In this document: one piece after another, positions 7,934 to 60,315 of the stretch
Position numbering within the stretch: the first letter of the stretch is position 1
How the letters are laid out: each line of letters starts with the position of its first letter
DNA from: Scyliorhinus canicula
Lineage: Eukaryota
Length of the DNA stretch: 64,000 bases
NCBI RefSeq assembly: GCF_902713615.1
Contig: NC_052168.1
Location: 5,828,001-5,892,000 of the forward strand
Reading direction: 5' to 3'
Notes under the pieces: generated by a model
The model's input: only the letters and a program-made list of their open reading frames with translations
Databases searched by the model: none
Told to the model about the DNA's origin: nothing
Translations under genes and position numbers: made by a program

Positions 7934-10193
7934 ATGGCCTCCCAAGTACGTCAGAACTACCACAAGGACTGTGAGGATGCTGTTAACAAGCAGATCAACC
8001 TGGAGCTCTATTCCTCCTATGTTTACCTCTCCATGGTGAGTTTTGAAGGATTGGGTCCTAATTTAAAATTAAGCTTGTCACTTCATTGCATTCTGAGCTG
8101 ATTTCTTCCTGTCAATGAATTGGAATTAGAATGTATATCTGTCACCCTCCCTGGGTTAAATACTGTTGATACAAAATAGGGATAATGCTAATAGTTGTGA
8201 CCTCGTCTGTGGAGTTAGTTGTGAGGATTAATCTTCAAATGTATCAAGCTGGTTTGCTTTTTCAATTGGTTGGCAGCAGTTGAACATAATTGAATGATTA
8301 GTTGGTGAAAATTGACTCTACTGTGGGGCTGGTTTAGCACACTGGGCTAAATTGCTGGCTTTTAAAGCAGACCAAGGCAGGCCAGCAGCACTGTTCAATT
8401 CCCGTACCACGTGCTGGAATGTGGTAACTTGGGGCTTTTCACAGTAACTTAATTGAAGCCTACTTGTGACAATAAGTGATTTTCATCCTAATGTGTAAAT
8501 CTTTACTTGATGCTGGATCCTTGGATGAAGCAGTAATTCTTTCAATGTATTTGCAAGTTATTTGCCCCTCTTCCATCCCCTTTTGGTTAAGGAGGGGGAT
8601 AGGTTCTTAATTCTGTGCTGAAAGAAATTGGGTTTTCTACTGTTGCCACTGAGTGAGGTACAGGGAAGGGCTTTCACGTTCGAGCCAATAATTTAAATCT
8701 CCTTGAAAGCAAGTACATTGAGGTACAGAATGGGTAATTAAAGCTATTTTTGACTTGGCCATGGATGGGATCTGGATCTGAACTGACACACTTTCCATTG
8801 TGTGTCTCTGACAGTCCAGTCAGATGTTGACCGAATCTTTGGGTCACCACTTCAATTTAAACCCTGTCAGTGAGTCCCAGCTCTTCAAAGGGCATTCCAA
8901 GACATCTTGGTTCTAATGCAGATTAAGATATTCTGTTTTTGAGATGTACTTTTGGAAGTTTGTAGCTTGTACATGGGTTAGTAAATGTGGGACTCTGTGT
9001 ACACTATATATTGAAGACTAAGGTACACTCTTGGGAAGTCGGGAAGGTAGTATCACTGGCTGCCTTGTGGAAGGTCCAGTGAAGGTGACTATTGCAGTAT
9101 TCCCGAGATCAGAGTCCCAAAAAAAAAATGATAATACAATTCAACCTTTCTATTGTGTTTCTACCTGCAGTCCTCCTACTTTGACCGAGATGATGTTGCC
9201 CTGTGTCATTTTGCTGAGTTCTTCAAGGAGCAGTCGCATGAGGAACGGGAACACGCTGAGAAACTGATGGAATTCCAGAATAAACGTGGAGGCCGCATCA
9301 TCCTGGAGGATGTCAAGGTTGGGTTCTGTTGTCTTGATACCACCTTTTATTTTTCTTTTGCTCCACCTAATTGGTTTATTTTGCCACTGTGCCCTTGGTT
9401 CTGGTTAAAACCTGCTTGGTGTTGAATTGAGAATGGGTGGATGAGTTTATGGCTTTTGCTCTTTGAATCACCCTGAGCTAGTGACTAAAGGAAGAATAAA
9501 TGTGGAGGGACAGAAGTAATGGGGTTTGGGCTGTCAACTAGTGGCTTAAATGTTGTGCTGGCTCATGCTGCTGTAGAGAATGTGATTTCCATTGATTAAA
9601 TAACTTTGGGTGGAGGGGAGGGGGGATAGGCTTTGTGACTCTGCAGCATCCCATAGCACTAATGAGGCCTCTTCTTCCTTTTCCAGAAACCAGAGCAGGA
9701 TGAGTGGAGCAATGGTCTGGAGGCAATGCAGAGAGCTCTGCAAATGGAGAAGAATGTGAACCAGAGTCTGCTGGATCTGCACAAACTCTCCTCTGGGAAC
9801 ACCGACCCTCATGTGAGTTGGATGTTGATGTTGGAATCTGTCCTTTACTTTTGTCCATTCTGTAGATCTTGACACTGATCACTAAGCAGTTCCCAGGTAT
9901 TCACTTCCAGTTTAATAGAATTGTGACTTGCCACCTGTGCACATTTAGCCACCATTACCTGCATCATTTTCCATCTCTTCCCCCCCCCCCCCCATTCTCA
10001 CCTGGGGAAAGAACTGTTTAAGCTAATATTCATTTTTCTCCATCAGTTGTGTGACTTCCTGGAGACTCACTACTTGGATGAACAAGTGAAGATGATCAAG
10101 AAGCTCGGAGATCACATCACCAACCTGAAGAGACTGGGAGCCCCTGAGAATGGCACGGGAGAGTACCTGTTTGACAAGCTCACCCTGGACTGA
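7934..10193 (+). CDS. Ferritin gene 1 (M/H-type subunit, 173 aa)
   Basis: Exons 7934-8035, 9171-9317, 9687-9812, 10047-10193; phase-0 GT-AG introns; intact frame; R46C; ends LTLD*; ATTAAA 10263-10268. Confidence 0.96.
8325..8487 (+). mobile_element. Short tRNA-derived SINE
   Basis: GGGGCTGGTTTAGCACACTGGGCTAAA...TACTTGTGACAATAA; related copies near 12362-12520 and 61040-61212. Confidence 0.65.
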
Positions 10194-10774
10194 CGAGGAT
10201 TGCAGAATTAATGAGGAAAAGCTGGATCCAATTTTGTGCTCTATCTTTATTGCTGTATTTGTATTAAAAAAATATAGAGCTGAACTTGTTTTTTCCTTTG
10301 TGTAAATCAGTAACTGATTTCATGGTGTTTTTTTTTTTTTTGCTAAATCTTCAACACGCTCTTTGAATTTCCAGTCCAGCTTCCTGAACTTGTTGCTGCC
10401 CAGGATAATGACAATTGTACTTCAGAAACATGTCGGACTTAAATGCAAATGTGGTTTCCTTGTGCTATTGTGGGAACACATTAATAAATGTCTTACTTGA
10501 CCCTTTAATTCAGTGTGGTGAATCTCTGATTCTGGGGGGGAAGACCTCCTGGTATTCACAAATCATGTACTAGACTGTCTCACACACCACTTGGTTTTTT
10601 TTTATAAGTGAGGATTGTCACATGCATCTAAAAGGATTAATCCAGCAGGTTTATTACCCCTCAAGACTCTTTGGGTAAGTAAACACTGTTTGAATCAGCT
10701 AAACCATTCTATATTCCAAGGTGTAATCTTTCTTCACTATCCAAGCTGATGGGGATTAAACACTTCCTGCCACT

Positions 10775-60200: not shown

Positions 60201-60315
60201 TGAACAAGTGAAGATGATCAAGAAGCTCGGAGATTACATCACCAACCTGAAGAGACTGGGAGCCCCTGAGAATGGGACGGGAGAGTACCTGTTTGACAAG
60301 CTCACCCTGGATTGA
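57234..60315 (+). CDS. Ferritin gene 9 (173 aa)
   Basis: Exons 57234-57335, 59005-59151, 59780-59905, 60169-60315; R6C, L117H, N121Y, H148Y; ends LTLD*; AATAAA 60409-60414. Confidence 0.95.
57680..58730 (-). mobile_element. hAT-like remnant in intron 1 of gene 9 (paralogous to that in gene 8)
   Basis: [13 protein letters not shown]...PKP motif; aligns with 50050-50930. Confidence 0.6.
58439..58600. mobile_element. Short palindromic Penelope-derived insertion
   Basis: Inverted arms AGTCTTACACCAGGTTAAAGTCCAACA...TGTTGGACTTTAATCTGGTGTTGTAAGACT; flanking direct repeat TGATCATGTGA (58428-58438, 58601-58611); absent from the gene 8 intron. Confidence 0.7.

Follow-up and report, generated by a model that had tools for sequence, protein, structure and literature searches.

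How can the coding exons of neighbouring genes be almost identical when their introns have lost all detectable similarity? This question is raised by a ferritin-H/M gene array of Scyliorhinus canicula (the small-spotted catshark) contained in a 64,000-nt stretch of NC_052168.1 (hereafter the window, to which coordinates refer). The copies, located by a repeat search and by blastn of the G1 exons against the window, are arranged head to tail on the plus strand and comprise nine complete four-exon genes (G1-G9) and three partial copies (G0, G0b and G10). The most likely answer, to which a probability of roughly 0.75 is assigned, is that old duplicates evolve in concert by gene conversion at the DNA level. 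The array consists of the following units.

97-1671, plus strand: G0, incomplete because the window begins within it; exon 3 97-222, intron 3 of 1293 nt, exon 4 1516-1671, long-tail type
4545-4994, plus strand: G0b, truncated fragment of short-tail type, made up of the 3'-terminal 73 nt of exon 3 (4545-4617), an intron 3 of its own and exon 4 (4848-4994)
7934-10193, plus strand: G1 ferritin gene, from start to stop codon; exons 7934-8035, 9171-9317, 9687-9812, 10047-10193; 173 aa
13147-15601, plus strand: G2 ferritin gene; exons 13147-13248, 14359-14505, 14875-15000, 15455-15601; 173 aa
21892-24025, plus strand: G3 ferritin gene; exons 21892-21993, 22883-23029, 23509-23634, 23870-24025; 176 aa
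27181-32054, plus strand: G4 ferritin gene; exons 27181-27282, 30543-30689, 31539-31664, 31899-32054; 176 aa; intron 1 of 3260 nt
34659-36439, plus strand: G5 ferritin gene; exons 34659-34760, 35439-35585, 35924-36049, 36290-36439; 174 aa
39159-40976, plus strand: G6 ferritin gene, young whole-unit duplicate of G5; exons 39159-39260, 39928-40074, 40406-40531, 40821-40976; 176 aa
43713-45622, plus strand: G7 ferritin gene; exons 43713-43814, 44531-44677, 45040-45165, 45467-45622; 176 aa
49625-52736, plus strand: G8 ferritin gene; exons 49625-49726, 51408-51554, 52203-52328, 52587-52736; 174 aa
57234-60315, plus strand: G9 ferritin gene; exons 57234-57335, 59005-59151, 59780-59905, 60169-60315; 173 aa
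63360-63461, plus strand: G10, exon 1 only, the remainder lying beyond the window

Each of the nine complete genes contains an intact open reading frame (173-176 codons) with canonical GT..AG splice sites, and intron loss was observed in none of them (0/9). The G7 protein, identical to XP_038639670.1 of S. canicula, matches the ferritin family Pfam PF00210 (E 3e-40); its closest solved relative is bullfrog M ferritin (293 bits), with the Glu/Tyr/Glu-Glu-His/Glu/Gln ferroxidase positions identical in the alignment. The fragment G0b has neither a promoter nor exons 1-2, and its exon remnants are 97-99% like the other copies.

Exon sequences were found by blastn to be 92-100% identical to those of G1. 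Among the nine genes, pairwise synonymous divergence (dS, Nei-Gojobori) ranged from 0.039 to 0.136 with a mean of 0.076, and mean non-synonymous divergence (dN) was 0.013. The likeness thus extends to synonymous sites, in agreement with the initial annotation of the locus, which had been made from the sequence alone. Its figure of 0-3 differences in exon 1 among 10 copies is valid against the consensus, whereas the range between pairs is 0-5, with 8 variable sites. Altogether the exons hold 45 variable sites, arranged as a structured mosaic. The introns fall into the lineages {G1, G2}, {G3}, {G4}, {G5, G6, G7} and {G8, G9}, between which no blastn alignment was obtained at E 1e-3; after trimming of the splice signals, Smith-Waterman Z-scores were ~0, no better than those of shuffled sequences. 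The earlier statement that the introns of G1-G4 are mostly unalignable holds with one exception, intron 2 of G1 and G2, which is 99% identical, and the length range given for intron 1 across the array (667-3260 nt) was recovered exactly. Intron 3 has kept its length in G1, G3 and G4 (234, 235 and 234 nt) yet has lost all similarity, so that in this intron insertions replacing the sequence wholesale are not the explanation. Global alignment with lenient gap costs was tried and abandoned, as it gave meaningless "identities" of 60-80% for unrelated introns; blastn coverage and shuffled Z-scores were used instead. The GC content at third codon positions (GC3) was 0.63-0.67 against 0.37-0.47 in introns, a difference compatible with biased conversion and codon selection alike.

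The boundaries of the alike blocks are sharp. Ungapped identity of non-sister pairs, 0.95-1.00 (about 0.98) inside exons, had dropped to chance values of 0.22-0.30 (about 0.25) by 10-20 nt beyond each of the six splice junctions. At the 3' end, likeness extends one base past codon 172 and ends 1-4 codons short of the stop; past codon 172-173 the copies divide into a short-tail type (G0b, G1, G2 and G9) and a long-tail type. It had been proposed that homogenisation stops at the splice sites and at the stop codon. The former is borne out by the identity collapse at the six junctions but breaks down for the two young tracts described below, which carry whole introns; the latter is incorrect, since the block ends inside the coding sequence (CDS).

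Exon divergence remained at ~2% regardless of whether the introns differed by ~2.5% (G5-G6), 8-10% (G5/6-G7) or 17% (the 5' part of G8-G9), or could not be aligned at all, and a pair-by-pair comparison showed that dS does not track intron divergence. G5 and G6 differed by 1.9% in exons and by ~2.5% in introns. The mosaic arrangement of exon variants was evaluated by a Sawyer-type (GENECONV-type) permutation of site order on 43 polymorphic coding sites in nine genes, a sample of modest power. The sum of squared concordant runs (SSCF) gave P=0.006 and the longest run (MCF) P=0.07, and all four combinations were present in 40 of the 105 informative site pairs subjected to the four-gamete test. 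The comparison of dS with intron divergence and the GENECONV-type test had both been suggested by the initial annotation, and both agreed with its reading. G2 and G4 are concordant at every polymorphic CDS site from nt 6 to 244, which covers most of exons 1-2, despite their unrelated introns, and variants are common across intron lineages; for example, the near-twins G5 and G6 differ at codon 35 (Ser/Phe).

Two tracts of recent exchange extend beyond single exons.

9171-9846, plus strand: G1 side of the G1-G2 tract; exons 2 and 3 with the entire intron between them, plus 34 nt of intron 3
14359-15040, plus strand: G2 side of the G1-G2 tract
51402-52728, plus strand: G8 side of the G8-G9 tract; from exon 2 through introns 2 and 3 up to codon 172 of exon 4
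59000-60310 (approximate), plus strand: G9 side of the G8-G9 tract

The G1-G2 tract is young, ~0.6 kb long and 96.7% identical overall (~98.5% over 9237-9829), and is flanked by intron 1 and the rest of intron 3, both unalignable. The G8-G9 tract, also young and ~1.3 kb long, shows ~96% identity overall, with 97% in intron 2 and 93% in intron 3; on its flanks, intron 1 and the promoter are 75-83% identical and the 3' untranslated regions (UTRs) are unalignable. As both tracts end at exon edges and carry introns, the donors were DNA. Stopping at splice sites would then be a statistical outcome rather than a rule, which matches synthesis-dependent strand annealing with homology in exons only.

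For comparison with other sharks, a whale-shark scaffold (L001) with four ferritin copies and a scaffold of the bamboo shark Chiloscyllium punctatum (L002) with three to four copies were used. Their exons are 84-97% identical to the catshark exons, and their introns are unrelated to those of the catshark apart from transposon-like matches. Interspersed-repeat families of the window also occur at the whale- and bamboo-shark loci and account for all cross-species "intron" matches. In the CDS tree, the nine catshark sequences form a clade against six orectolobiform sequences with support of 100/100. Eleven CDS differences are fixed between the two groups, four synonymous and seven non-synonymous. 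Between orders, dS was 0.12-0.17 and dN 0.05-0.07, as against the mean dS of 0.076 within the catshark, and dN/dS was ~0.4 between orders vs 0.17 within the array. The high between-order ratio and the share of replacements among the fixed differences (7/11) may reflect selection that is relaxed, or positive and spreading across the array. A tree was also built from the proteins of 35 array ferritins, which represent about ten shark genera; their bodies group exactly by taxonomy, and the short or long C-terminal tail type changes 9 times on this body tree. As far as the protein sequences tell, these changes fit homogenisation of the body between old tail classes. A deletion of 9 nt in the long type would seem sufficient to produce the catshark short tail, which differs from the orectolobiform short type; the short tail may thus have arisen more than once. 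Tail type was considered as a tag of orthology and rejected because of the 9 changes and the possible independent origin.

A further alike block was found upstream of the genes. A TATAAATA box lies 62-75 nt before the ATG in each gene, with ATTGG (CCAAT-type) boxes upstream of it, and the leader from TATA to ATG measures 62-75 nt with the TATA box included (e.g., 7872-7933).

13005-13094, plus strand: core promoter of G2, with ATTGG boxes (CCAAT-type) and TATAAATA 68 nt before the ATG
Ends of the equivalent core-promoter blocks, ~90 nt each: 7887 (G1), 21833 (G3), 27121 (G4), 34606 (G5), 39106 (G6), 43661 (G7), 49572 (G8), 57181 (G9), 63305 (G10)

Over 96 columns, the core promoter is 92.7% identical among non-sister copies, and 65 of the 96 columns are invariant in 10 copies; the 5'UTR between the core promoter and the ATG is 64% identical among the catshark copies. 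The architecture of the promoter is conserved across orders. Its identity is 92.7% within the catshark vs 79.6% between orders, with two adjacent fixed differences; the corresponding values for the 5'UTR are 64% and 61%, with 0 fixed differences. The long-type 3'UTRs form three deep lineages, namely {G3, G4}, {G0, G5-G8} and the whale-shark copies, and the distance between the two catshark lineages equals or exceeds their distance from whale shark. A homogenised promoter core and UTRs that diverge at both ends had both been noted from the sequence, and both observations stand.

Taken together, the results favour old paralogues with concerted exons over lineage-specific re-expansion. The duplicates are regarded as old because their introns are unalignable even at conserved length and because the UTR lineages are as distant within the catshark as they are from whale and bamboo shark. 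Conversion is indicated by the ~2% exon plateau, the mosaic variants and the single clade formed by the catshark copies. A DNA rather than a cDNA template is preferred because two tracts carry introns and because the core promoter, unlike the UTRs, shows a lineage-specific pattern.

Synthesis-dependent strand annealing is an established model of repair. In a mechanism of this type, a double-strand break in one copy would be repaired by DNA-templated conversion from a paralogue. Invasion and re-annealing would require homology, which would be left only in selectively conserved blocks, i.e., the exons of 102-147 nt and the promoter core. Most tracts would start and finish inside one exon, producing an identity collapse within ~10 nt of the splice sites, and synthesis that reached the next exon would copy the whole intron of the donor, giving rise to tracts such as G1-G2 and G8-G9. 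The ~90-nt core promoter would be concerted too, to a lesser degree than the exons. Heteroduplex rejection may take part in this process, and selection would keep the blocks convertible.

The genome-wide median dS between whale and zebra shark is 0.061-0.111 over ~50 million years (My) (PMC13100897), corresponding to a rate of roughly 0.6-1.1e-9 per site per year. At this rate, the saturated introns imply duplications at least ~300 My old, an age that agrees with the cluster synteny reported between Greenland and white shark. Conversion is slow, as the coalescence of the exons (dS 0.04-0.14) is older than the G5-G6 duplication. Word shares in sequencing runs of a related organism were 0.07-0.09 for intron 1 of G1 and 0.19-0.21 for intron 1 of G4, which, being inflated by transposable-element words, give only a rough divergence estimate of 2-5%; on this estimate, exon coalescence probably also predates the split from that organism. 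The initial annotation had spoken of ongoing conversion of old duplicates. Plateau, mosaic, clade and UTR distances agree with that view, provided that "ongoing" is understood as slow.

Several observations weigh against concerted evolution of old duplicates. The exons are shorter than the homology usually quoted for efficient mammalian conversion. Orthologous introns were not found between the catshark and the two orectolobiform scaffolds, the only matches being between different intron numbers (transposable-element-like) and in one 25-nt motif, so that duplication before the split of the orders rests on near-saturated UTR distances. In the 3'UTR tree, the branch that decides catshark monophyly is weakly supported (65/48). 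The 55-60-nt 5'UTR stays diverged between two alike blocks, which conversion alone does not predict; it would seem that selection acting on the promoter and the coding blocks influences which sequence is retained. Finally, the between-order ferritin dS (0.12-0.17) is 2-3 times below the expectation from the whale-zebra shark rate (PMC13100897), and synonymous constraint therefore adds to the likeness of the exons.

The same observations have to be weighed for other explanations. Each shark lineage could have re-expanded its array by birth and death after the split, so that youngish copies with constrained synonymous sites would lie in non-coding DNA that decays fast near a chromosome end. Clustering of copies by lineage is predicted equally well by such a history, young whole-unit duplications do exist (G5-G6-G7), between-order dS is low, transposable elements are abundant in the introns and substitution rates rise toward shark chromosome ends (PMC13100897). 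Re-expansion is nevertheless considered unlikely, as the kept length of intron 3 in G1, G3 and G4 in the absence of homology indicates age and not turnover, exon divergence does not scale with intron divergence, exon variants are mosaic, and catshark UTR lineages lie at least as far from one another as from the whale-shark copies; moreover, a preprint on shark ferritin clusters reports synteny between Greenland and white shark, at least 250 My apart (10.1101/2024.09.09.611499). Purifying selection acting alone on exon nucleotides, through codon use or maternal-mRNA features, and on promoter motifs, with no exchange between copies, would accommodate the shortfall of between-order dS by a factor of 2-3 from the genome-wide shark rate, the GC3 of 0.65 and the promoter architecture kept across orders. 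It gives no account of the 11 CDS (4 synonymous) and 2 promoter differences fixed between catshark and orectolobiform sharks, of a within-genome dS lower than the between-order dS for old paralogues, or of the intron-carrying tracts. The exons of G5 and G6, furthermore, diverge as much as their introns (1.9% vs ~2.5%), and the exon remnants of the dead fragment G0b are 97-99% like the rest despite its private intron, so that selection as the sole cause is very improbable.

Equally improbable, and largely refuted, is repair templated by spliced ferritin mRNA or its reverse transcript, by which exonic sequence alone would be homogenised. The edges of the alike blocks match the splice sites to ~10 nt, as such a template would predict, and high ovary expression is reported in the preprint (10.1101/2024.09.09.611499), but the 5'UTR and 3'UTR are part of the mRNA and are not homogenised, the alike block ends inside the CDS at codon 172-173, and the presumably untranscribed promoter core is homogenised. 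All introns are kept in the nine genes, and two tracts carry whole introns. The initial annotation had already argued against a simple mRNA or cDNA template from the diverged UTRs and the alike promoter, and the kept introns and intron-carrying tracts are in agreement with it. Least probable of all is an assembly artefact in which short-read polishing of a family of >100 copies pulled exon variants to the majority base and left the introns untouched. The exons are indeed multi-copy and shorter than a read pair, and only 25-56% of the intron words are present in contigs from public runs of this species, i.e., the region is hard to assemble; however, the same exon/intron contrast is present in the independent whale-shark and bamboo-shark assemblies, the same pattern is seen in annotated proteins of about ten shark genera, 45 variable exon sites with a structured mosaic remain, and polishing leaves the promoter and the intron-carrying tracts unexplained.

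Within the preferred reading of DNA-level conversion among old duplicates, it is conceivable, although rather doubtful, that conversion serves as the vehicle for array-wide sweeps of amino-acid replacements, with exons of 100-150 nt acting as autonomous conversion units. The idea rests on the seven non-synonymous changes among the 11 fixed differences and on the dN/dS of ~0.4 between orders vs 0.17 within the array. The exon length lies below the homology usually thought necessary in vertebrates. If such sweeps did occur, shark ferritin arrays would be a natural system for measuring how little homology germline conversion needs and how selection makes use of it.

Other features of the locus were also recorded. 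Five substitutions are found in G5 only, and three or four of these are non-synonymous; among the changes are Arg40Gln, Thr162Val (one step common to G3) and Asp168Ala. Its dN against the other copies (0.015-0.031) is the highest in the array, and G5 may be escaping homogenisation or decaying. A ~25-nt ATATTGGAATCTGTCCT-like motif was observed near the 5' end of intron 3 in G1 (9812-9860), G2 (15000-15040), G0b (4660-4690) and the bamboo-shark copy Cp3 (L002 ~15600), and is absent in G3-G9. It could be a relic of an intron lineage predating the split of the orders, or a splicing element. At the orectolobiform loci, exon 2 of the whale-shark copy Rt2 (L001 3890-4036) is frameshifted and 84% identical, as against 91-97% in the other exons of Rt2; exon 1 of Cp3 (L002 12174-12275) contains two in-frame stops; and an inverted ferritin copy occupies 17398-15702 on the minus strand of L001. 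No iron-responsive element was found in the catshark array, and no Rfam family reached its gathering score anywhere in the 64-kb window. With short leaders and no such element, the array ferritins probably escape control by iron regulatory proteins (IRPs).

Intergenic DNA of the array contains a minisatellite (17515-18588) between G2 and G3, in which a 41-nt unit is repeated at least 23 times and around which the G-over-C skew is strong (+0.26 to +0.31 at 16-20 kb). A tRNA-like short interspersed element (SINE; 8310-8430) and other interspersed repeats, of families D15, D16 and D18 (e.g., 16312-16520, 19145-19353 and 47896-48104), are present in introns and intergenic DNA. A repeated intergenic element accompanies the ferritin units, 1-1.5 kb upstream of the next promoter, at the following positions.

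4040-4389: repeated intergenic element
26334-26673: repeated intergenic element
33629-33968: repeated intergenic element
37636-37987: repeated intergenic element
42195-42544: repeated intergenic element
47425-47557: repeated intergenic element
53730-53819: repeated intergenic element

Since this element lies directly upstream of the truncated exon 3 of G0b, the deletion in G0b postdates the formation of the unit.

Shark FTH1/FTL clusters have been described in a preprint, according to which the copies number in the hundreds, lie in a few clusters that are syntenic between Greenland and white shark, and are expressed in the ovary (10.1101/2024.09.09.611499). The catshark window belongs to the same gene family and array type. 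Its passage on the copies treats them as ancient conserved duplications, and the phrase "gene conversion" occurs 0 times in the preprint; no description of the exon/intron contrast of a shark ferritin array was found in the literature searched. The array itself is thus already published, and the process, concerted evolution that affects coding blocks only, is known as well; the catshark array is a clean example of it. The present reading corrects that of ancient conserved duplications, as copy-to-copy identity cannot date the duplications, and orthology across species has to be judged by introns and UTRs instead of exons or proteins. Because every shark order has hundreds of copies, such arrays could serve to estimate how often conversion occurs, how long its tracts are and how little homology it needs in a slowly evolving vertebrate germline.

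Recombination templated by cDNA or transcripts, known from yeast models, would likewise homogenise exonic sequence only. However, UTRs should then be alike, the promoter should be unaffected and introns should be lost, and all three predictions fail in the catshark. Among ferritins, gene conversion between ferritin-H paralogues has been reported for the mammalian X-linked ferritin-heavy-chain-like family (PMC2724270). On the preferred reading, the catshark array resembles this family in that conversion keeps ferritin-H paralogues alike. The mammalian copies have no introns, resemble retrogenes and are expressed in testis, so that no exon/intron contrast is possible there, unlike in the catshark. 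Interlocus conversion confined to coding sequence is known from the Drosophila Amy duplicates, plant rbcS families, primate gamma-globin and hsp70. As in those cases, the catshark paralogues are alike within a genome while lineages differ, flanks or introns are diverged, tracts are mosaic and third-position GC is raised, although codon-usage selection would raise it equally. The catshark array differs in its copy number (at least 11 in the window and >100 reported genome-wide), the three introns of each gene, blocks of only 102-147 nt, edges sharp to ~10 nt, fully saturated introns and a separate 90-nt promoter block that behaves like the exons. It thereby offers an unusually clean vertebrate case of concerted evolution limited to short, selectively conserved blocks, with whole introns occasionally carried along.

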